Notes: generated by a model from the letters alone, not told the origin. A stretch of 63,056 bases of DNA, filler included, from Hyphochytrium catenoides (GCA_900088475.1; 15 parts of 15 records of this genome joined end to end with filler, not necessarily neighbours in it); one strand, 5' to 3'. Positions 1-35,707 are shown, counted from the whole stretch's first letter. A program made the numbers and translations.

Positions 1-167
1 ATGTCACCATCCTCATACTTCACGTCACATGTGCCGTCCGAATGAACCTTTGTAACAATTGCTTGGTACAGCTTCGATCTCCCTTTAAAGTTGACATTTA
101 CTCGCTCATTTAGATGGATCTGGTGCCTGTTGATGTCTTCTTTTTGAGGCGAATTGCTTTTGGGCAT
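1..167 (-). CDS. Tudor-like domain protein, N-terminal part (runs off window start)
   Basis: My translation from ATG at 167 (in-frame TGA just upstream): MPKSNSPQKEDINRHQIHLNERVNVNFKGRSKLYQAIVTKVHSDGTCDVKYEDGD. Fits the Tudor/SH3-like pattern V-x-A/V-x-F/Y-x-G...Y-x-A/G-x-I/V...DGTxDVxYxDGD. Not in the ORF track. Confidence 0.7.
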   Translation of the reverse strand, partial: MPKSNSPQKEDINRHQIHLNERVNVNFKGRSKLYQAIVTKVHSDGTCDVKYEDGD

Positions 168-889
168 TTTGCATCACCAGAAGATGGTCCGTTTAATCAG
201 TTAGGTCCTCATCTTCTTGGTTCTATGATAACGCTTCCCAAATCGGACCTATTCATCCTATTAGGCAACGCTTGCAAGAGCTAAATGAGAGACTGGCTGT
301 GAGCCTACTGTTTGGCCTGCCGTCTCAGTTCGGAGGCCTTATAGAGCTGCGCAGCGCTGATTATTGTCGCGAAGCTTTGACACTTCAGAAGCAACACCAA
401 GCGCTGTGCCAAGTTGAAGCTGCGAACATACCAGCAAAATGAAGGACCTTTCATCCAGACCTCCCCTCGGCCAATAATATGTGAATTTCATTTCAAAAGG
501 CGGCAATATTAGGGTCAATGATGCGCACTCTGGATGCCGACAATCAGTGTTATATTTAGAGGAAAGTATTGCTGTGGAAATTGAAAGGTCTGGACGATGT
601 AATTGGGTAGGTTAGTTCGGGGCAAACCTTCAAACAAAAGAATGCGACGAGATTAGGAAGCCTCTGTTTGTAATATGTGCGGGGCAATAATAGATGAATT
701 TGGATTTCTGAAGCTTTCTGCTTTCTGCAGATTTGAGTTTATAGAGTAACTGAGATGTGAAGCCACGATGGGGCAGATGACGATGGCTGAGAATCGTCAA
801 TTGTATAACGTAAAGGAAGACCATCCCCGTTGCTGAGTTTCTATTGGCGGCACGACCAGGTGTAGGTCGCACAGCAATACAGGTTTACA

Positions 890-3800
890 ATGTCACAAGG
901 TACCACCGGCTCTCTACTATTGCTGCCGGCAACACGGTGTCCTCTAATATGACCGAAAGTAGAGCCATACCAAGAGCCCCCATGGGCTGGCTCTCCAACT
1001 CCTGCCTCGAGTTGGAATCTGGAGGTACTCAAGGGTGGGCAGATTCTAACGACCATTGACCTCGCTGGCGGAGAGAAGAGCTGCTTCATGATTGGTAAGA
1101 GCTGTCAGCAATCTGTAACAGTCTCACGGACGACATAACCTCAGACGATGTTCATTATGTAGGGCGACGAGGTGATCTCTGTGACATAGTTCTAGAGCAT
1201 CCCTCGATATCCAGACTGCATGCGGTTCTCCAATTCTCAAAAGACGGTTGGCCATTTCGGTGCTCTGCGCTTAGCTCCTCGTCCCCTCATCACTTCATGT
1301 AGGGCACCTCTTTCTTTACGACTTAGGCAGCACCCACGGGAGCACGGTCAATAAAAAGAAGGCTCAACCAAAGGTTAGTCTCTGAAAGTCGATAGACCGA
1401 ACGGGTTTCTATAACTGGTCCCCTATGGAGGACTAATCCTTTTTTGTATGGGGTAAGACTTATGTTGCAGTGAATGTCGGGGATATGCTAGCCTTTGGAG
1501 AATCGACCAGACTCTACGTTGTTAACGGCCCTGCTGAGGTACGTTGACTAATCTTCACGCTCCCGAGGAATGCTGGGCTCTCGTTTGGGTTATCCCTACC
1601 CTACACCTCTAATGGTCTTTTGCCTACCTTATGTCGGAATCCCTGAACACAGTTAATGCCCGCGGAATACGAGAGCGAAAGACTAAAGATCCTCAGAGAG
1701 AAGGTGCTTTGCTTTCCCTTGTTGCGCATTAACACAGCTGAGTGGACGGTTTTAACCTTATAACTACCTGCGACCAGCTTGAAACCAGGAGAGATGAAGA
1801 GAGTCGTACCGTCCCCAAAAGCTCTGAGACGCCCGAGGATACCAGCGTGAGCTGGGGCTTCAGAGAAGATGCGGTGGAGGAAGAGGAAGAAGAGCCTCGT
1901 GACGATGAAGGAAACTCAAGTGGGAGACAGATGCCAGAGTATTTAAAGAAGGTTAGTCACTACATATCGCTGCCTCTTCCGCGCTTTGTTGTCCTTCTTA
2001 CAGGTAGACGCAGGCAATGTTGAAGGAAAAAGAGAAGTTTACCCCCACCATCACTGAGTCGGACGTAGTAGAAAAGGTTGGTGCACGGGTCTCAATCTCT
2101 GTGGACTAGTTAGAGGAGTCAAGTGAAGATAGCTAGCGTTAAGGGAGTGAAAGGCCAGAAGCGCGTCCTGCCATAACGATACGGCCCTGCAGAATAGGAA
2201 ACGTTGTTCTAAGGTTCAAAGGAGGTCTGGGAATGGAAGAGTGGACAATGGACTGCCCTAGAGACAAGGCGACGATGCTAAGCCTGCCCGTTGCCTTCAG
2301 GACCGCAAACTCTTTGAGAAACTTCAAAAGAAGGTCCAAAAGCTAGAAAATCTTAGAACTGAAATCGAGAGAATTACTGCCAAAGAGAACGATCAAGCCG
2401 GGCTCACAGAAGGACAACAACAGACAATAGCTAGGAACGAAAAGCGGATAAAGGACTTGGAGGAAGAGGTGGAGCAAATAGAAGACACGATCAGAGAAAG
2501 GTAAGCCTTATGGTCTCCTGACCATTTCTTATTTGCCTAACTTCCCTAATGCTCCCTTCTCTAAGAAATGCGCAACGTGAGGGAAGTGCCGTAGCGAAGC
2601 GAAAGAAGCGGAAAGCCGAAAGCGAAGAGGAATATAACAGCGAAGAAGACGACTTCTATGACCGGACCGGCACTGTCAAAAAGAAGCGCCATGCTCAAGG
2701 TATGCCTGTAGGTTCCTCCTGCTCGCTCCATTTAGCCTTAGAGATCCTTCTCGCTAGGTCATCATACTTTTTTGAACGCACCTTAGCTGCATTTCACGTT
2801 CTTCTCTCAGCTAGTAGCCCCATTTTCCTGGTGTGGCCTCTTCACTTTTGTTTTGATTATGGGAACATAGGGAATAAGGCCACCAGTGCTACATTGAAGG
2901 CTGAGACGGTAGAGTCTTTGGAGAGCCAACTTGCAGAAGTTACTGGAAAGCTCCAGAATCTACATGAAGAAATCGAGGAGCTCAGCAAAAAAGCGGCCTC
3001 AAGGTTTTTCCAATGCTATTCGTGCTACCTCTACACAGCTCTCACCGTCGTTCTTTTCACCCACATTCCTTACTTCCTTGTTGTTGACGTCTAGTACCAT
3101 CGCTTTGCCATTACCCTAGTCCTGCCGGATTGGATACCCGTCCCATCTTGAAACAGTGACACTTCTCTTTATCTTATGCCTCACAGTGAGGAAACTGGTG
3201 AAGTCGATTCTTTGGACGCATTTATGATGCAAACTAGTAAAGACGTCGTGACAGAGATGCTCCTGGTAACAGCTTCCTATTGATCTTGCCGCGATTTGGA
3301 CTATGGGTGACCGACTCTCTTCGCGTTTGCCTACCCTTGCAGAGAGATGTTTTCATCTCAAGCCCCTCTACATTTATATTTTTTCCCGCTAACAAAGACC
3401 TTTGCAGTCTAAAGAAAAGCAGAAGAAAGAACTGGGATTGGAGAAGAAGAGGATAGAAACTCTTCTATCGATCGCCAGGCCTGCACTACCGGGACTTGTG
3501 GCAGCAGTGCCGAAGACAAAAGAAGCGCAACCAGCTTCAGAAACAAGACCTAGAGACATCATGGTTCAAAAACCTATCGAAAAGGAAGCGTCCCCTTCTG
3601 CAGAGACAGAGGTGGCTACCCGTCCGACCTCTCCTTCTAAACCTGCGTCAAGGCCGGAGGCGCAATCGAAGAAGATTGTCCAGCCGACGAATGAGCAAAG
3701 TGGAAAAACCTCTCCAAAGACAGCAGTGGCGGCCAAGAGTAAGGGTCCTTTGTTACCCCAGGGACCAGCTCCGGCTACGGAAAGTCCTCGACAGGGGCTG

Positions 3801-3989
3801 CAGGTACGAGGAGCAAAGCGGCCGCTTAGTCCTGCTCAAGACGCCACTAGGATACAGCCTTCTTCGGCTCCTCGGCCGACTTCAAAGGTCAGAACTGAAG
3901 AAGAAGAGGAGGAGGACGTCACATGGGTACCGCCGTCCAACCAACGCGGCGATGGAAGGACACCGCTGAAAGATAAATACGGTTACTAA
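890..3989 (+). CDS. SLC4A1AP: Kanadaptin-like FHA-domain protein (multi-exon)
   Basis: Spliced by GT-AG introns (first intron 900-962): MSQEPYQEPPWAG...LEVLKGGQIL...FMIGRRGDLCDIVLEHPSISRLHAVLQF...LYDLGSTHGSTVN...VGDMLAFGESTRLY (FHA core). Also SWGFREDA, EEDDFYDRTG, DSLDAFM and the C-terminus WVPPSNQRGDGRTPLKDKYGY*, all kanadaptin hallmarks. Confidence 0.93.
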
Positions 3990-26140: not shown

Positions 26141-29100
26141 GACGGTGGCACCTTCGGCGACCGACGTGAAGGCTACACTGTCGACTCAACTTCAGGTCAC
26201 TGAACCGGATAACGTACTGGTCTTTGTTAACGCTCTTGGGGGCCAAATTGATCCTTGTCAGGGAGTAAACTGTGGGCAATTCGGCCGCTGTGTGGCTGCG
26301 GACAGGAGCTGCCTCTGCTTCAACGGCTATAGCGGCAGTACCTGCAGTATCCCGCCTCCTGTGGTCCCAGTTAACGGCGGTTGGACGGCATGGTCTCAGT
26401 GGAGTGCCTGCAGTCGGAGCTGCGGTGGTGGGGAGCAGAGCCGCCGGCGGAGCTGCACCAATCCAGTTCCCAAAGATAATGGCACTCCATGCGCTGGATC
26501 GGAAGTTGAGACTCGCACTTGCAATGAGGGAGCATGCCAGATAGGTAGTACACGGCACCACAATCATTCGTCTGCCGTCGGGTTCTAATACCTCTCTCTT
26601 TTACCTTATTCTTTTACTTTGTTTAGCTTCTCCCTCTGTTTCCTTTCTCTTGGTGCCTCATGTCTGATGTGTCCCATATGGGCATATAGGTGGATTTCGC
26701 TCTATCTCTATGGTCACGATGCATCTCTGTGCTTTACTTAATGCCGTTCCTCACCTTTTCGTAGTTGTGGATGGCGGTTATACGCCTTGGTCACCTTGGA
26801 CAGAGTGCTCCGCGAGTTGCCCCACCGATCGCGGAGGCTTTTTCATTGGCAACCAGACCCGCAGTCGGAGCTGCACGAGTCCAACCCCTTCCGCTGGCGG
26901 CAAGGACTGCTCAGTGTTGGGTAGCAGCACCGAGACGAGGCAATGCAATGGCGTGGAGTGCCCCTGGCCCGCGCCACTATGTCCTCCATATCCCCGAGGT
27001 GAGAGTTGAGGGGAACGACATTTTTCATGTCTACAGCCATCTCTGGTTTGTCCCATTTCCTCTTCTGTGAATACGTTGATGAATACCTTGTTCTTATAAC
27101 AATGTCTCTTCTTCCCTCATGCCCATGGAAATATTTGTGCCCTGTGGCATGCTCTCTACAATCAGGTACACCTGTGACCCGCCTCGAGAGTTCCCTACCG
27201 GAGTGCTCTGGACATGGTTCTTGCGTGCGTCCTCGCGGATGCGCAATCAATATTGACTGCGGATTTTTTTGTCAGTGCCAGACGAACTGGGCGGGAGAGG
27301 ACTGCTCCATCACTTCTGAGCAGTTCCTGGAGCGCCAGACTATTCGTCAGAACCTCGTGGAAGCTGTTGCTAATGCGTCACAGCTGATTGTACGTGACCA
27401 GGTGGATTGCATCTAAATTCCTTCACAGTCGTAGCATCTCTAATCTCTTCCTCTTTCACCCTTCTCCCCCACCTCACCTTGACGGTTTCTCTTTTTTATA
27501 TATCTCAGCTCCGCCTCGCTCAAAATAAGTCTGTTCTCAGGTGATTGACATTGCCTCCCCTCCCTCTGTGTCGCATAGTATATTGCTCCAGAGTCTGTCG
27601 GCGCCGTAGCTTCATCTCTCGCCACGATTACCTCATCCACCTCAGAACTCAACTCTGCGACAGTAGAGATGACACTCAGCTTGACCAACTCTCTCATCGA
27701 GATGGCGACCTCAATTCCCAGTGGGCTCAATGCCAAGAGTGCCCAGCAGATTCTGTTAAGTCTTAGTAACGCGCTGGAGGCCAGTGCGAATCCGCTACAT
27801 AGTCCTTCCGCTGAGGAAGAAAGCGGAGCGGTTGATGTAAAGCTGGCAGTTGCTGCTGAGGACGTCAGTATTACCGTAGCAACGGCAACCGATGGGCTGA
27901 TGGACCTGCTCCTTGGTGATGCTGCACCGGGTGAGGGGATGGTGGCTTTGACTAGTCCTGGACTGGTAACGGGTGCGATGAGGGCGGAGATCAAGTCTTA
28001 CTCTGTGCTGCAGCTGCTCGACGGGCCAAGCGTCACAATCTTGGAGGAAAGCTTGGACAGTTCAGATGCAGTAGATGTGAAGGTCGGCTCTTTTCAACGC
28101 TCAATGTTAAGCCCCTTGAATCTCCTCGTACCAAGCTGACTTCCTTGACTGTCCGCAGATGCTCCAATGGAATGTCCCGCCATACAATGCTGGTTCCGAA
28201 GAACTGAAGACGCAGGTTGTGAGCATTCGCATGGCCACCTCAGAGAAGCGAAGCGGATACCGAGTGCAGTACCTCTCCGTACCGCTCATAATAGAGTTCC
28301 ATCTGCCAAACTTCAATTTCACGGAAGGTGAGGTCTCGGAAAAATGTTTATTGATCCTCTGTTCTGTCTGTTCTCTCTCTGCTTAGCTTCAAACCTCAAA
28401 GGAAAACGTGATGCAGAATATTCTTCCGCTTTCGTCCTTACTTTTCTTTCTTCGTCCTTCGGCCCGTCCATCATGCATTCAATAGGGACACACCCAACTT
28501 GCCGCAGTTGGAACGATAACTTAGAGGATTGGGTCACTGAGGGTATTGTCCAGCGAGGGGTTGTCCTCGACGAGTTCGGAGGAGTTAAGGTTGTCTGTGA
28601 AGTGACACATCTCACAGACTTCAGTGCGACAGGGGATGCCATCACTCCCCAAATAAACCAGGTGCTTAGGGTCACGTTCTTCTCTGCTCTGTCTCTCTCA
28701 GCCGTTCCTCTGAATTGCATTCAAAGTATTTGTGGCCGCCAAAGCCTTAACATGCCCTCCTCCTTTGCGCCGATTGTTCTTCAGATCGATCTCATTGCCG
28801 ATGCACAATACCTGGTAGATTTTGAGACAAACAAGGTTCCAGTGATCATACTTGTTGTCTCCTTATTCTGCTTTGGTGTGCTCATCGTGGTCTCCTATGC
28901 ACTGGACAAGAAAGAGACGACGACCTTGGAACGGCAGTTGGAAGACTCATATGTACGTTTGGGCGATCTGTCGGAGGTGGCAGAGGACAGCGACGATGAG
29001 AGTGACAACCATATACCGACTAACGCCACCAGTGCTAGAACAGCCTCCACAAGGAGTGTTGACGAAGATTCAGAGCGTCTTGAGACCCGGCCTAAGCCTT

Positions 29101-31229
29101 CAGCAATGGCTGGTGTATCAGTCAAAAACGCTGTACTGCAAGCTCCTTGGCAGATCCTACTAGTCACCTTCTCGGCTCTGCAGGCTGAGGGAAAGGCTAT
29201 CGGAGTGCTGAAGCCCGATGTTCGTTCCCACATCACCCTGTCCAGACCTCAGCGGCTAGTAGCCTTCTGCGCAACGGTAATGATCACGTTCACAGTCAGT
29301 GCCGTTTTCCATGGCAAGAGACAGCCTAACTTTGCTAGCACTCTGGTTGTCTCTTTACTGTCTATGATGGTTACTCTGCCGGTGGACTTGGGGCTTCCAT
29401 TCGCGTTTAGGGTGCTGCAGATGCCGTTCAAGTCCTTCACCCTCTCCAAGTCGGAGGACGGTAATTTCCGCTTAAATCTCAAATGTCTTGCCATTTGCTG
29501 CTGCTTCAAGCGCAAACCGAAGAAGAAAAGTGGACTTTCCGTGCTAGATAATGCCAAAAGCAGCGGTAACAGGCACAGGAACAAGGATGGGTTAGGGAGC
29601 CCAGACTTTGGACAGCCACCTTTACCTGTGAAGCCAGCTTTTGAGCTATCCACAAATGACATTTCCTACAGTCCGTTCGAGCACGAGTTGGGGTCGACGC
29701 GACAGTCTACGGATAGCTCATGGACCGTCGTTCGTGTCCAGTCACCTCAGGCAGTAAAAAGTGAAGCACCAGCTGGGCGCCAGCTCTCTCAACAGGAACG
29801 CACAGAGTTGAGTACAGAAGCTTGGACAACCAAGGCCTCTTCATTTCCGAAAGGTCCCGGTCCCCTTTCCAGGTCCAAGGGTTTGGCATCGTCCTCTGAG
29901 ACTGCAGGGACGCTTGTTATGGCATCGTCGTTCCAAAAGCAGAGCTCAGCGCGCCATCGCCCACGATCACCACTTGACTTATCTAATATTGGTCGTTTGA
30001 AGGTCGTAGAGCTTCCACAACGGAAGACTGCGCCGCGTAAGATTATCGTGAGGCAGACTTCACCCCAGCCAACGGGTGTATTGCAGGACGAGGGCATACA
30101 CGACCTGGAAGAGGAAGACATAGAGTCAGTAAAGCCATACAAGGAACTCCCTGGGATGCTTCTCTTATTTGGAGGTGGACTACTGATCATTGGCATTCTC
30201 TTTCTCGCAGCAGCAGGCTATTTGGCACTGTATCCGGACCAAGCCTTTGGCTACGGCGGGTTGTTTGCCTTCATTCCTGGCCTGTTGGGCTTACTGGGCA
30301 TCTTAACGAATGGTATCGCCATGTACGGACTTAGTAAGCGCCGACGTGGCACCACACGGACTAGCGGTGCTTATGTTCTACTCCTGGGTCTAGTAATGAC
30401 CTCAATGACAATCGCCTTTAGCTCTCTGCCAGACTCTCCACGCTTGAAAGCGTTCATTATCAACGCTCTGCGCGAGACTTGGGATATGCATGTTAAGGCT
30501 CTGGATGACCCCGCAAAAGCAGGGTCATCCCGGACCTTCCTCCAGTCTGTTCAGCACAAACTTGTGTGCTGTGGCTTTGAAGATGTTCGGGTTGATACCT
30601 ATCGGCACGGCTGTCCTTATGGAGAGGATATCTCTCCCTGTAGGGAGAAGTTGCTGTACGCCCTTTTAAAGGAAGGGCAGGCGTTAGTTATGCCTTTCTG
30701 TGCGATTGGAATGATGCACGCCGTCTTTGGGATGTTGCTGGTGTGGATCAGTCTCCAACCACGTTTCTACTCAATAGACCCCGTGGCGCAGGAGCTGAGG
30801 ATTTGCAAGTTATCTTCAAACCGGCAAATGCTCCTGGATGGAAGGCCCATTGACCGACAAATGATTGAAGCAGCCATCACTATCCAAAAAGCGTATAGAG
30901 TCCATTATTACCGTCTCAGGCGGACGCGGATGCAGGAGATACGGGAATGGAGGCAGCGGAGCAAGCTTAGGCGGTTTCTCTTAGTTCTTCTCTATGTGGC
31001 GGCTATCTATATCATCCTCTTCTGTCTATATGTCAACCTCGTCTTCGCGATGAAATTTGATGAAGAGAGACAGCGTTCCTGGCTCACAACCTCCATGATC
31101 GCGATCCTGGTAGATCTCTTCATCAGAGAGCCCACCGCTGTCTTCTTCAAGGCGGTCAAGGAAGCGCTGCTCTACCTTATGCCCAGGGGTTTCAAAAAGA
31201 ACTCGTATAAGTTCAAGCGCAGACGCTGA
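26141..31229 (+). CDS. Polycystin-1-like / GAIN-GPS membrane protein: EGF, 2x TSP1, EGF, GPS, PKD-like TMs with embedded tetraspanin-like domain and IQ motif (5' partial, multi-exon)
   Basis: EGF DPCQGVNCGQFGRC...CLCFNGYSGSTC; TSP1 VNGGWTAWSQWSACSRSCGGG and VDGGYTPWSPWTECSASC; EGF CSGHGSC...CQCQTNWAGEDC; GPS CRSW...W...C.VTHLTDFS (28500-28625); LSRPQRL before TM2; tetraspanin-like CCG (30567-30575); IQKAYR; FAMKFDEERQRSWL...LFIREP. Confidence 0.85.
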
Positions 31230-31619
31230 GATGGCTCAGCGTTATGTAGCTTATCTTCGTTCACTCTGTCTCAGACCCTTCTCCTCTATTTTGTTATTGA
31301 TTGATCAATGGGAAGAACCTAAGGATGCATCTCTGCATTTTCTTTCTTAGATAGACAACTAAGACTAACACAACTGCGACGATCCTGTTGACCCCTTTCC
31401 GTTGTGTTACTTACAGTACCTTAAGGGCGATGGCACTGATCTCTGTGGGAGGAGTTGTGCACACTCTCCTTGGGCCTCGTCAATTTCTAGAACCTTAGAG
31501 ACGTTCCGAGTCCATAGTTGGCATTGGATGCTAGGGAGTACCCACCTGAATGGAAAGAAGGACCGCGAGAAGAAGAGCACAAGACGGGAAAGTTAGCAGG
31601 ATTCAGATGTTTCTTTGCC

Positions 31620-33480
31620 TACGTTGCTGAGCTGCGTTCGCCTTAACGTTAACATGGGCAAGGATAATGAAAGCCCGGTCCACCACAAGCGAACAGCCTT
31701 CTCACTCAGCAATGCAGATGACCTAGCGTGGAACAGAGCCCCGATGAGTCGAAAACCACCTGAGCAATTAAGAGTCTTGATTTGTTAGATTCTACTGACC
31801 ACGGAAGTGGCTGAAGCCTTGCTCCATACCCAGCTCCGCTACGCTTGTTGCCAATATGAGTATCACATCTCACAACCCTGATCGCGTCAACTCTCTCGTG
31901 AACCCCACATCCTCTCCCAGTTGACGGAGGTCAGGGCGGACTCTTGTCAGGCAGTCACTTTGCTATCCGCATTCTTTCTAAAGGTGGACCGTCATAGACG
32001 AACGGGCCGAATATTGGCCCTTCAACCCCCTTCAGCTTAGCGTGTAAGTGAATTGTTTCGTCGTCCGGACTGAATGAAGCTCATCCGCTACTAATGCCAT
32101 TACGGTTAGTACCCAGCTTTTGGTAACTAAATCCATGAGAGAGGTTAATGATGCCAGGAGTATGCCCCAAAGCACTAAATCAGATTCCTGCCGCGCAGCA
32201 AGTTCTGGAGGGGCTAATCCGTCTGCGTGTTCAGTGTTAATATTGAGAAATCTCTTGGGGGTTCATGTCAAGCAGCCAGAATACTCATCCTCCGGATAGT
32301 TGGTCTTGCCAAGTGAGCGATGCTTCGTTTATGCTACCACTAACAGCAAAAAAAGAACACCAACAGTACTACTACTTCCCCTGAGTGAATACGCTTATTA
32401 GTAGGTACGTATCCCTTCCAGCTCGGAAGTGGCTGCTGGTGCTGTATGAATAGCTGCTGATAGGGTCATCTTCGAGGTCAAACCACAATGCTTTTTTAGC
32501 CCTTTGTTGAAGGTAGATGAGATGAATGATCCCTATTCAGAGGCGACGGCGGGAACCTTACAAAGCTAAGGCACAGAAGCACCAACAGTTCTTCTACCCG
32601 ACGGCCTTAATCGGCTTGGGTCTATAACGGCGGTCTGAGTTCGCTTCTCCCATCTTCAATAGCTCCATTAATGCTGTCCACCAATCTGAAAGCCCCTTGC
32701 TCAGCAATGAGTAACCTTGAGCCGTTCGAGTTTGCGCACTTCAGCGCTTGGTAAAGTTATCCGGACGGGATCTTAGCTAGGCTTTCCTGATGCGGTCCAG
32801 AAAATGGGGCTGACCTCGCTCTCTCCCAGATTGGCTCATGCAGCCTCATCCTCTGCTCTTGGAACCAGGAGAAAGTGGGAAAGGTATAGGAGGCACAGCT
32901 GACTAGGCTTATCATACAATGCCGCAGAAACAGTCAGTCAGTCTCTACTCTAAGTTCCGAAGAAGATATTATATTGTGATCACCAGAATTCTGGCACTCT
33001 GAGCGTGGTGGTAACCTTCGCTGCAGCTATCATCTCCTTCTTTGTTGTCCTGGGTGATGATGTTGTGGCCTTTCTTGGGGTATCCCTCTTCTTCATGAGT
33101 ACTTCTACTCCTGCTTCCCGCCAAATCTGTTATTGTCCAATGGCGGCGGCGGGGTCGGACCATGGCTTAGTCTGTCGTCCTCGTCGTCGGTTTGGCACTA
33201 ACCGGGTCACCAGTGCTATTTTGGGACTCTGATCTGAAAGTCTCTTGGGAACCTCGCTCACCTCCGGATCCCTTCTTCATCATCCCGGGCTCCAAAAATC
33301 AGAAACGTGCGTTAGTTCGTGGTTTCTCAGTTTCTTATGAACACAGGGCTTGGATGTTGCTGTGTAAATTGTGGACTCCTCGCTGCAATCCAGACCTCCT
33401 CCTTACTTATGCAGCAGTAAATGCCGGCTATCAGCAGGATGATTTGCCTTCTGAACGACAATAATTTCATGTTGGAGCAG
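31620..33480 (-). pseudogene. Heavily degraded Ty3/Gypsy-like pol relic
   Basis: Stop-ridden minus-strand remnants in Gypsy order: WFDLED (about 32480, RT 'LDL'-like), YPEDE (about 32290, YxDD-like), LVADEL (about 32085, 'VADALSR'-like), LQPLP (about 31810), LVVDR (about 31680, integrase). Motifs are degenerate. Confidence 0.45.
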
Positions 33481-35308
33481 TACGAGGCTCCTGGTTAGGC
33501 TGTTTGTAGGGCTGCAGTGGGTCCCGTTGATTAGTTTGGGGATCTTGGGGAGGGCAAAAATTAATTTCTCGTGTCGTTGACTGTGGGAAATGGTTGGTTG
33601 CTGAAGCTTCCCTGTGATCGTCGTCGTTTACTTGTTGATGCTTCTCGCAGGCATTATCGATGTTTCATAACTACTGATGCACATGGCTTTACGCCTTCAA
33701 GAAACGATCCTTGGTGGTGGCCTGCATGAAGAAAATACACTTCAGATCCTGATGCATATTCTTTTCCCTTAGCTTCTGCATTGGACCCTTCTCTTGCTTG
33801 CTTGAGCCAAGTGTGATAATGGTATTATTATTGTTGGTGTCTTCTCTTCCCTCACCAACTTCCTAAAGATCCTTATTGCTGAGGGAACAGACAACTATGA
33901 AACATTGATGGATGCCGGAGAAGAGGAGAGAGTTGAATGAAGAGACGAAAACATTTCGGTAGCTCTTGCCTCTTCTTTGTCTTATCCTTCTTCTTCTGAG
34001 AACTCGTTGTAGCTGCTACTTGTTTTGCCGATAATAATACCGTGATCATCATCATCACAATAGCAATGCTCTTCATCGAGCAGAAAACGGAACATGCCAG
34101 CCAGTACTCTTCTGCGTGTTGCTACCAGCTCGTCTCCTTGTCGTTGTTTATCCGTTACAGTACTTGTTATTTAGAAGAAGAGAAGACGATGATGAGGAGC
34201 TGTACCTCCACCATTCCCTACAATCCATCTGAGGCTTTGCCCTGTCTGTTCACAATAATGAGAGCACACAAATCGGCAGAGGAAGGGCCCAGAGTCTATC
34301 GTTTCTCCAATAACTGCCATATTATTGCAGATTCCCTACTGGAGAAGCCCTTGTGGAGCCCGTTTGAATGATTTTCAAGATATCATCATCCTTGAGCTGA
34401 TTATGGGAGAAGGAGATGATGATGTTGTTTACCAAAGCGTTTGTTGTGGAGGGGTAAGGCCTTAGTAGGTGGGAAGAAGGGGTGTTGCCCACCAAGCAAG
34501 CAATAAAGGCCTTCCAAAGAAGAAAGGGCTCTTTCGTTTCATCCGCACTGTTCCATCCTCACTTTCATTCATCCAACTCAAAGTAGCATCCGTTACGGGG
34601 TTGATACCTCAAGAAGAACGTGGAGGCCTTTATTACCCACTGACGACTTGACCGGTAGAGAGGACCCACTTGTGACCCCCGTGTAGCTGGGCGCTTCTCA
34701 TCCGCAGTTTCGTCCATGGTTCTCCCTTGTCCCCCAGCAATAGCACCGTGCTTTACAGGCTTGGAACTATTTTTTTTTTTCTTCCAGCCGGTTCTTGTTC
34801 TGCTGGCTGAGCACTGAGCACCAGCAATAAGTTAACCGTGGGCATTCTGCTATTCTGCCATAACAACACAGGGAGTGACCACGGGGAGATGGGGGATGCG
34901 TTGTAGCAAACAATGTCGCAATAATAAAGGTCGAAGTGGATGATGATCGGTCTTGTCCACTGCTGCCTGCATGGCGTAGTAATGATAATATCTACTACGA
35001 CGTTCTGAATCAGAAGATCTGACAGTGCGAGGTGAAGGTGGTCATCACCAGCAAGAAGAAAGTCTAGCAGCACATCAAAAGATATCTCTCGTCTTTATTA
35101 GTGAATATATAAGAGTTCTTCTCCTCCTGCACCGTCTCATTTCTCAATTTCCTGGGTAAAGCGAACTCACCAACCAACGCTTCGTTGCGCTCTTGACAAT
35201 CAGGGCTCGACCCAGGATCTCAATAAATTACCAATCATCTTCTTGTGTTTCAAGAGTTGAGCGAAGGAAGAAAGAAGTGAAGCGGACCTCTCATTCATCG
35301 CCATCATC

Positions 35309-35707
35309 ATGAATTTTCATTACAAAAAGGACGGCACGCTAGACATGCGTTACTCGTCCTCCAGGGCCGCCGCATCATCCTTCAGTGGTGGAGGGGGCTT
35401 CAGCAGTAGTGGCTTATCTAATACTCGGAGTTACGCGGTCTCCAGCCCGAGTTATTCACCTTCCGCTCCAAGCCTTCACTACAAGAAAGATGGGACGCTT
35501 GATATGCGGTACAATTCGTCAAAAGCGGCAACAAGAGAGGCCTCCTCCTCTCCCGCAAAGCCCCACCCGTCCGGAGTCACCGCTGCACCAGCAACTTCAA
35601 CGAGGGTTTCGTCGCCTGGTACACGTAGTGGGCCCGACGTGCACTATCGAAAGGATGGCACAACACCGGATATGCGCTTTACCACTTCCAAGCAGCTGGT
35701 GGCACAA
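35309..35707 (+). CDS. Protein with three HY(K/R)KDGT-x-DMR(Y/F) repeats in Ser/Pro-rich linkers (3' partial)
   Basis: Open frame from ATG at 35309 to the contig end: HYKKDGTLDMRY twice and HYRKDGTTPDMRF once; the DNA copies differ at synonymous positions. Confidence 0.75.

Follow-up and report, generated by a model that had tools for sequence, protein, structure and literature searches.

The gene considered here lies at positions 26141-31229 on the + strand of a 63,056-nucleotide stretch of Hyphochytrium catenoides DNA (GCA_900088475.1), in which 15 pieces of the assembly are joined with filler and which we call the window; the piece that holds the gene spans 26141-35707 and has a GC content of about 50%. 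We conclude, with a probability of about 0.82, that it is a single, 5'-incomplete gene for a receptor of the polycystin-1 (PC1)/REJ family, in which a tetraspanin and an IQ motif are nested and which has neither PLAT nor a channel half. Its product is referred to below as the window protein. The architecture is a conserved natural fusion that apparently has no published description: literature searches returned no paper on a PC1/REJ-tetraspanin fusion and none on a tetraspanin nested within another membrane domain, the nearest being a report on a REJ and GPS protein of Ectocarpus, in which a tetraspanin was not reported (PMC4700764). Both building blocks are well known, and members of the family are already in public databases.

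A predicted PC1-type five-helix domain encloses the tetraspanin

Four sequence profiles (A1, A2, A3 and A5) were compared with the PDB sequence set. Profile A2, which represents the 'TRPQR' region with transmembrane helices (TM) 2-3 in 28 sequences, matched polycystin-1 chains only in the whole set (6a70_B 240-333, E 1.1e-5), through an alignment that covers H.W.S, TRxQR, the TM2 core and the 'P....lF' block of TM3. A preliminary description of this DNA had pointed to three hydrophobic segments with an 'SRxQR' motif of PKD1 type, and the A2 match to PC1 TM2-3 bears this out. The last two segments, which it had called 'PKD-like', were likewise assigned to PC1 TM4-5, both by profile A3 (the last two helices, 42 sequences) and in three dimensions (3D): the best PDB match of A3 lies at 6a70_B 536-601, collinear with the A2 match in PC1, and the F....W...S.....P pattern is present.

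Hydropathy analysis gave nine strong segments, in keeping with the nine or so TMs expected, namely one after the GPS, two at about 29250-29408, four within 30141-30758 and two within 30960-31148. When the protein encoded downstream of the GPS-adjacent intron (814 amino acids (aa), alignment A4) was folded with AlphaFold2 (AF2), the helices had a predicted local distance difference test score (pLDDT) of 85-95 and two long loops scored below 50. An exhaustive 3D search (VIA) of 48,161 representative chains ranked PC1 first (8z6b_A, Z 19.0, root-mean-square deviation 3.3 A over 192 residues, 19% identity), superposing model residues 1..789 on PC1 3064..3610 with the tetraspanin skipped, and CD53 second (Z 12.5, model residues 450..664). 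Foldseek, run on the same 814-residue model, returned tetraspanins alone and missed PC1, which was later recovered by the exhaustive search.

These profile matches and the predicted model indicate that TM1 and TM2-3 combine with the final two helices into a PC1-type five-helix N-terminal transmembrane domain. The tetraspanin and the IQ motif are therefore nested in the cytosolic TM3-TM4 loop, and a tetraspanin placed inside another domain is not explicable as two neighbouring genes. The preliminary description had seen all of these parts in one chain; the single chain stands, with the tetraspanin between PC1 TM3 and TM4 and with full-length homologues in transcriptomes, and what is added to it is that, by sequence and model, the tetraspanin is inserted inside the PC1 five-helix domain, not appended to it. 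A tetraspanin begins and ends in the cytosol. With both of its ends cytosolic, the insertion would therefore preserve the topology of the PC1 core, and basic clusters are found on the predicted cytosolic side throughout.

With human polycystin-1 (PKD1; 6A70 chain B, 8Z6B chain A) the window protein shares a GAIN/GPS with HL|T and stalk before TM1, the motifs H.W.S...TRxQR (TM2), LP....FP..F (TM3) and F....W...S.....P (TM4-5), and a long disordered TM3-TM4 loop, which in human PC1 also measures about 200 residues (chain residues 334-535, between the two sequence matches); REJ is shared by the relatives of the window protein. In contrast to PC1, it has no PLAT in loop 1, no TM6-11, no TOP/polycystin domain and no C-terminal coiled coil, while it carries the tetraspanin and IQ insert in its TM3-TM4 loop and an ectodomain with EGF and TSP1. 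The absence of PLAT and of a channel half had been noted from the outset and was upheld by Pfam: PLAT had no match in the window protein or in any scanned relative, and PKD_channel and 7tm_2 (the secretin-like seven-helix domain) had none in the window protein. Its open reading frame (ORF) stops at 31229, just past TM5, leaving no channel-like half and no coiled-coil tail, and the relatives likewise terminate after TM5. Adhesion G protein-coupled receptors (ADGRG6, ADGRL3, latrophilin) resemble the window protein in carrying a tethered stalk and, within a GAIN domain, an autoproteolytic GPS, whereas its membrane part is PC1-type plus tetraspanin instead of a secretin-like seven-helix domain.

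A tetraspanin module by profile and predicted fold

The four helices at about 30156-30750 had been read as a tetraspanin, and several comparisons agreed. Scored on the window alone, PF00335 gave 32.1 bits over ORF residues 606-799 (30159-30740), which is exactly the Pfam cutoff, and it reached 54.1 bits in the relative P0001. Profile A1, built from a 20-sequence alignment of the module, matched CD53 (3.9e-13), CD9 (5.2e-11), Tspan15 (1.4e-9), CD81 (3.2e-9) and Tspan7 (2.1e-8) in the PDB; one Trp, C157, C158, G159, C172 and C181 are invariant in that alignment. Hydropathy places the helices at 30141-30239, 30243-30326, 30360-30431 and 30678-30758, with a short first and a large second outer loop, the latter bearing CCG (30567-30575) and two further cysteines.

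An AF2 model of 30099-31226 had a mean pLDDT of 78, and its top ten Foldseek matches were all tetraspanins. By VIA, the tetraspanin model matched CD53 (Z 12.6), PRPH2 (11.8), UPK1B (11.7) and CD81 (11.7), and the isolated large loops of CD81 and CD9 fitted the window loop alone (Z 7.7-8.4, 15-20% identity; CD81, Z 8.4). On the strength of profile and modelled fold, the four helices between 30141 and 30758 form a genuine tetraspanin. Canonical tetraspanins (CD53, CD9, CD81, Tspan15, Tspan7) have in common with it the four TM helices, the loop sizes, CCG plus two cysteines, and the fold; its identity to them is 12-17%, and its loop cysteines are limited to the minimal four. They are, however, free-standing proteins of 200-350 residues with short cytosolic tails, whereas the window module is nested in another membrane domain and tethered at both ends, by a 230-residue loop on one side and the IQ linker on the other.

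Ectodomain, GAIN domain and stalk

Upstream of the membrane, the EGF-TSP1-TSP1-EGF order proposed in the preliminary description was recovered. TSP_1 matched twice, at 46.0 bits in exon 1 and 25.7 bits in exon 2, both above the Pfam cutoff of 21.6, and two EGF-like modules scored below threshold at 15-18 bits (EGF_2/EGF_Teneurin for that of exon 1); the EGF segment of exon 3 is conserved in L001 (ORF 173-607), a contig described below. The GPS motif was also where it had been placed: the codons CAT CTC ACA at 28608-28616 encode HL|T, and about 40 relatives keep the pattern C.YW......W...G......C...HL[T/S].F together with the stalk up to '..DA.LL'. The GPS has two cysteines in the window, against four in the classic motif, and the two-cysteine form is that of most relatives. 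Profile A5, which covers the region before TM1 (GAIN) and includes the window exons as rows, matched solved GAIN domains over both subdomains (ADGRG6 5.7e-15, ADGRL3 4.6e-14). The conserved GPS pattern and stalk fit a cleaved, stalk-bearing receptor.

In homologues that are collinear with the window protein, a REJ domain (98-179 bits) precedes the EGF-TSP1 block. Because these relatives have 850-1700 extra residues at the N-terminus, the window gene is likely to be REJ-bearing as well, and to judge from the homologous sequences its REJ domain probably lies beyond the cut edge of the piece.

The IQ-like motif and a juxtamembrane cysteine cluster

The IQ-like motif of the preliminary description gained its support from the family. 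Of the pattern [FILV]Qxxx[RK]Gxxx[RK]xx[FILVWY], the window version, IQKAYRVHYYR, retains I, Q, R6 and R11 and has V in place of G7. At the identical position, relatives score 27.8 (P0010), 20.9 (P0007), 18.4 and 17.5 bits (PF00612, cutoff 20.3), and the family consensus reads AAxxIQxxxRGxxxRxRxxRxxE...W. Profile A1 also picked IQ-bearing chains, Sp17 at 1e-4 and, weakly, the IQ motifs of radial-spoke, Nav-channel and myosin-V chains. The identity of the motif is supported, by sequence, at the family level, and an IQ before TM4 was found also in several members with no recognisable tetraspanin.

Directly after the PC1-type TM3, a cluster of cysteines is combined with a polybasic run (CLAICCCFKRKPKKK, 29484-29528). 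CC and basic residues recur at the same position in relatives (P0001, P0004), and the segment is a candidate S-palmitoylation site.

A stramenopile family and the variation of its TM3-TM4 loop

Relatives surfaced only by HMMER, an exhaustive search with which gave 115 proteins. A word-indexed homologue search found no relatives, neither with the 961-aa ORF nor with alignment A4, an ESM Atlas feature search gave no usable match, and single-sequence phmmer against the PDB returned a sole match at 0.14, which was spurious. The closest relative, P0001, has 695 aa and is 39% identical (E 3e-111). For several large relatives (among them P0003, P0007, P0021 and P0064) the alignment runs from the tetraspanin as far as the C-terminus, and there is whole-length collinearity, as between window residues 17-1206 and P0024 992-2079 (E 1e-97).

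By Pfam, single chains of relatives contain REJ, EGF, TSP_1, GPS, Tetraspanin and, in some, IQ. Cantina marsupialis, Bicosoecida sp. CB-2014 and Platysulcus tardus each provided single transcriptome ORFs of this architecture, the co-occurrence of GPS and tetraspanin for which the preliminary description had proposed to search protist proteomes. UniRef100_A0A7S1C6T6 and A0A7S1C4Z5 (Bicosoecida sp. CB-2014), P008204 and P020894 (Cantina marsupialis) and P008939 and P002572 (Platysulcus tardus) belong to the same family, with the same order of parts (REJ, EGF, TSP1, GAIN/GPS, TM1-3, tetraspanin, IQ, TM4-5), and differ from the window protein in their loop lengths and in sequence (16-27% identity). 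The P0080 cluster, which is tetraspanin-bearing, includes MAST-4 proteins, and further relatives come from marine metagenomes; the named sources are all heterotrophic stramenopiles. Databases name the relatives 'PKD/REJ-like domain-containing protein' (for example UniRef100_A0A7S1C6T6) or not at all. The preliminary description knew of no account of this architecture; no paper on it was found in the literature searches, but in the databases it is already present as a stramenopile family under generic names. That the architecture is that of a conserved stramenopile family, and that the window gene is truncated at its 5' end, are further additions to the preliminary description.

Exon layout as in the window gene was found in L001 (Logan SRR28521203 contig, 1-3870), an orthologue-like locus which encodes P0001: an exon for EGF is followed by those for GAIN, by one for the GPS that ends in 'CLATHLTEF...PQIN', by an intron and by the 695-aa ORF. 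The loop from TM3 to the tetraspanin has about 135 residues in L001 and about 245 in the window protein; its length can therefore change freely between modules that are themselves conserved.

Both TM2-3 and TM4-5 were matched in 39 proteins, among which the TM3-TM4 loop holds a CCG tetraspanin in 18/39 and no hydrophobic segment, as in PC1, in 9/39, the rest having other hydrophobic inserts. In P0004, P0005, P0054 and P0128, four tightly spaced helices, with no large loop and no CCG, take the place of the tetraspanin. Examined as possible degenerate tetraspanins, the compact inserts (P0004, P0005, P0054, P0095 type) gave only E 0.02-3 with the hidden Markov model of the module, and P0004, P0005, P0054 and P0128 (E 0.02-0.05) could not be detected as tetraspanins by it. 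P0095 (JGI/Logan metagenome) has in this loop a RhoGAP domain (44.5 bits, residues 2021-2135) as well as a compact four-helix block. From these sequences, the TM3-TM4 loop appears to be an insertion hotspot in the family. Some short ORFs from the Cantina and Platysulcus transcriptomes, P0008 (428 aa), P0123 (363 aa) and P0050 (343 aa, labelled complete), consist of the tetraspanin, the IQ motif and the last two helices.

Among known proteins, sea-urchin REJ proteins, mammalian PKDREJ and Esi0130_0068 are similarly large REJ/GPS receptors, of gametes or flagellated cells. Esi0130_0068, from the brown alga Ectocarpus, is a stramenopile protein with REJ and GPS and with 6-7 predicted TM helices (PMC4700764). 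A tetraspanin or an IQ motif has not been reported in the literature for any of these, whereas the window protein has both.

Gene model and neighbouring sequence

The ORF list and the raw sequence gave a gene of seven exons on the + strand, with GT-AG introns, 1382 residues and a stop at 31227-31229 (Table 1). The frame is open from the edge of the piece, so that the 5' end of the gene is cut at 26141, and a GT-AG intron at 26545-26764 brings the frame back between exons 1 and 2. The donor of exon 4 is uncertain, with 28082 as the alternative to 28076; a donor at 28127 was dropped, as it would leave an intron of 31 nt while the remaining introns measure 123-220 nt.

Between the GPS stalk and TM1, we regard 28662-28784 as an intron because it is T-rich (T content 0.35, compared with 0.34-0.41 in the other introns and 0.21-0.29 in exons), because splicing it out yields 'PQINQIDLIADA', in agreement with the family consensus 'P.xN.VDP.GDA', and because the corresponding site of L001 also holds an intron. 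At 123 nt it is in frame, and an ORF finder therefore reads through it. Beyond it the frame is open over 28785-31229, uninterrupted as the preliminary description had stated. A hidden in-frame intron within the loop 29451-30140 was judged unlikely, the base composition there being exon-like (T 0.21-0.22). A short basic tail follows TM5, and the ORF ends 10 residues past the last helix region.

Table 1. Predicted parts of the window gene (all coordinates are those of the window).
Feature	Position	Strand	Basis
Exon 1, 5'-cut: EGF-like (~26256-26345) and TSP1 repeat 1 (~26388-26537)	26142..26544	+	Pfam
Exon 2: TSP1 repeat 2	26765..26998	+	Pfam TSP_1
Exon 3: second EGF-like module (~27192-27311)	27166..27389	+	Sub-threshold Pfam EGF; kept in L001
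Exon 4: helical GAIN subdomain A	27579..28076	+	Donor 28076 or 28082; profile A5
Exon 5: GAIN subdomain B strands	28159..28327	+	Gene model; aligns with family GAIN region
Exon 6: GPS motif (28494-28625), HL|T 28608-28616, stalk start TDFSATGDAITPQINQ	28486..28661	+	Pfam GPS
In-frame 123-nt GT-AG intron between GPS stalk and TM1	28662..28784	+	Composition, consensus, L001
Exon 7, ending at the stop	28785..31229	+	Single open frame, 2445 nt
TM1 (PC1-type)	28836..28901	+	Hydropathy peak 3.14; AF2 pLDDT 91-95
Acidic disordered cytosolic loop at the position of PLAT in PC1	28902-29213	+	Model residues 66-108 pLDDT <50
PC1-type TM2-TM3, 'SRPQR' and 'LPxxxxxPxxF' motifs	29214..29450	+	Profile A2
Long disordered cytosolic loop	29451..30140	+	Model residues 247-449 pLDDT <50
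Tetraspanin module, four TM helices	30141..30758	+	Pfam, profile A1, fold
IQ-like motif AAITIQKAYRVHYYRLRRT, linker from tetraspanin TM4 to PC1-type TM4	30873..30929	+	Pfam IQ sub-threshold; family
PC1-type TM4-TM5, 'YxNLxFGVKF...W...S...D.....P' block	30957..31196	+	Profile A3, 3D match

Downstream of the gene, 31230-35300 contains no ORF longer than 110 aa; its eight longest ORFs gave no Pfam match, and neither tRNAs nor tandem repeats were found. These 4 kb or so are either long intergenic DNA or a gene broken up into many small exons. A frame at 35309-35707 (+), open into the edge of the piece, encodes a motif of some 12 residues three times, as HYKKDGTLDMRY, HYKKDGTLDMRY and HYRKDGTTPDMRF, with Ser/Ala-rich spacers after each copy. 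It had no meaningful Pfam match, Methyltransf_5 at 19 bits being spurious.

Alternative explanations

Several points weigh against the reading of the gene as a single PC1/REJ-family receptor with a nested tetraspanin and IQ motif. Scored on the window alone with Pfam, the GPS reaches 20.2 bits, under its cutoff of 22.5, and the IQ motif 14.0 bits, under its cutoff of 20.3. The best match of the TM4-5 profile to PC1 is marginal when taken alone (E 0.084), and REJ is outside the window owing to the cut edge. The splicing and the single transcript of the window gene are deduced from homology, and the short ORFs P0008, P0123 and P0050 may stem from fragmentary assembly or may be genuine short products with an internal start. 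Finally, we infer cleavage, calmodulin binding, localisation and the role of the tetraspanin from the sequence.

The alternative that fares best, though we consider it doubtful, is that the protein is an auxiliary subunit which gates or traffics a separate TRPP/PKD2-like channel, with the tetraspanin replacing the channel half as a docking surface. Such a role would suit a member of the PC1 family with a GAIN domain, a stalk and the five-helix domain, and it would suit an IQ motif, which is frequent on ion-channel assemblies; profile A1 weakly matches the IQ regions of Nav channels. However, the window protein has no TM6-11, no PKD_channel domain and no C-terminal coiled coil, which are reportedly the parts engaged in the channel tetramer of the solved PC1/PC2 complex 6A70, and no PKD2-like gene lies within the window.

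Clearly less probable is the formation of two products, a GPS receptor ending after TM3 and a separate protein with tetraspanin, IQ and two helices, through an internal promoter or alternative processing, in which case the fusion would be overstated by the long open frame. The ORFs of relatives that hold the C-terminal module only (P0008, P0123, P0050), the disorder of the 230-residue linker and the reliance on homology for a single transcript would all be compatible with it. Nevertheless, the last helices are those of PC1 TM4-TM5 and pack with TM1-3 in the model (Z 19.0), and a split would therefore break one structural domain. Full-length single ORFs are known from Trinity transcripts of three species, Trinity assigns the short P0008 and the 1978-aa P0127 to one gene, as isoforms, and in the window gene the loop has a coding-like composition and the frame is stop-free over 2.4 kb.

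We consider it very unlikely that a large, fast-evolving family has here a paralogue that is decaying or unexpressed, with recognisable domains but no function. The family does have many paralogues, the GPS and IQ scores of the window are weaker than those of its relatives, and two of the four cysteines of the classic GPS motif are lacking, but that two-cysteine form is also the one seen in most relatives. No exon is disrupted, the splice sites are canonical and the last exon is open over 2445 nt, and the family-invariant residues are all kept: W, CCG and the two cysteines of the tetraspanin, HLT, R..R and P of TM2-3, and F and W of TM4-5. Least credible of all is a tetraspanin likeness due to hydrophobic composition alone with CCG by chance since, even though the PF00335 score of the window is right at the cutoff and middling structural Z scores are common for helical bundles, profile A1 matched five solved tetraspanins at E 3.9e-13 to 2e-8, CCG, two loop cysteines and the Trp are invariant in 20 diverse sequences, the isolated CD81 and CD9 loops matched (Z 7.7-8.4) and homologues reach 54 bits with PF00335.

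Discussion

Read as a PC1/REJ-family receptor with a nested tetraspanin, the window protein would be arranged as follows. The ectodomain would lie outside, TM1 would lead inward to the acidic loop, and TM2 and TM3 would pass outward and inward again, to be followed inside by the Cys-rich polybasic segment CLAICCCFKRKPKKK and some 200 disordered residues. The tetraspanin would enter and leave from the cytosol, exposing its cysteine-bridged large loop outside, beside the GAIN domain, and the IQ helix would be inside, before the PC1-type TM4 (outward), TM5 (inward) and the short basic tail inside. GPS autoproteolysis at HL|T would leave the conserved stalk on TM1, and the adhesive EGF/TSP1 (and probably REJ) fragment would stay attached after cleavage, so that force or ligand acting on this fragment might alter the engagement of the stalk with the five-helix core. 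The tetraspanin could contribute lateral clustering, lipid or curvature organisation, or the capture of partners beside the GAIN domain, while a calmodulin-like protein on the IQ helix, just before TM4, could provide calcium feedback; ion flux, if any, would require a separate channel partner. We infer, as did the preliminary description, calmodulin binding and a 'membrane organising' role, and the protein may be a cell-surface, possibly flagellar, receptor for adhesion or mechanosensing.

The fusion hints that tetraspanins and PC1-type receptors function together. Mutations of PC1 underlie most dominant polycystic kidney disease, and the role of its first five helices is unclear. Human PC1 shows complete colocalisation with tetraspanin-4 (TSPAN4) on retraction fibres and in migrasomes (PMC10487028), and calmodulin binding regulates the function of human PC1 according to the title of another study (PMC4999191). 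Both relationships, of PC1 with a tetraspanin and of PC1 with calmodulin, might be hard-wired here in one gene. The architecture suggests that PC1-type receptors are naturally partnered with tetraspanins and with control by calcium/calmodulin, an idea that fits the colocalisation of PC1 with TSPAN4 (PMC10487028) and the title of the calmodulin study (PMC4999191).

In a more far-reaching version, which we put forward as a speculation with rather low odds, the fusion would be a 'Rosetta stone' for a physical unit that the five-helix domains of the PC1 family form with tetraspanins in general, and animal PC1, PKDREJ or PKD1L would bind a tetraspanin in trans through the same interface, with calmodulin nearby. 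If true, this would explain the presence of PC1 in tetraspanin-rich retraction fibres, migrasomes and extracellular vesicles, and would give a concrete partner to the N-terminal transmembrane domain of PC1, so far a domain with no function assigned.

The RhoGAP domain of one relative, together with the other inserts, suggests that the TM3-TM4 loop tolerates insertions. With about 800 residues after cleavage, the window protein would be a compact natural construct for structural work on how the stalk engages the core. Across many paralogues and in deep-branching stramenopiles, evolution has retained the five-helix domain and the self-cleaving GAIN domain, has shed PLAT and the channel half, and has built the tetraspanin and the IQ motif into the TM3-TM4 loop. 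This suggests that the five-helix domain can act as a signalling or scaffolding unit in its own right.

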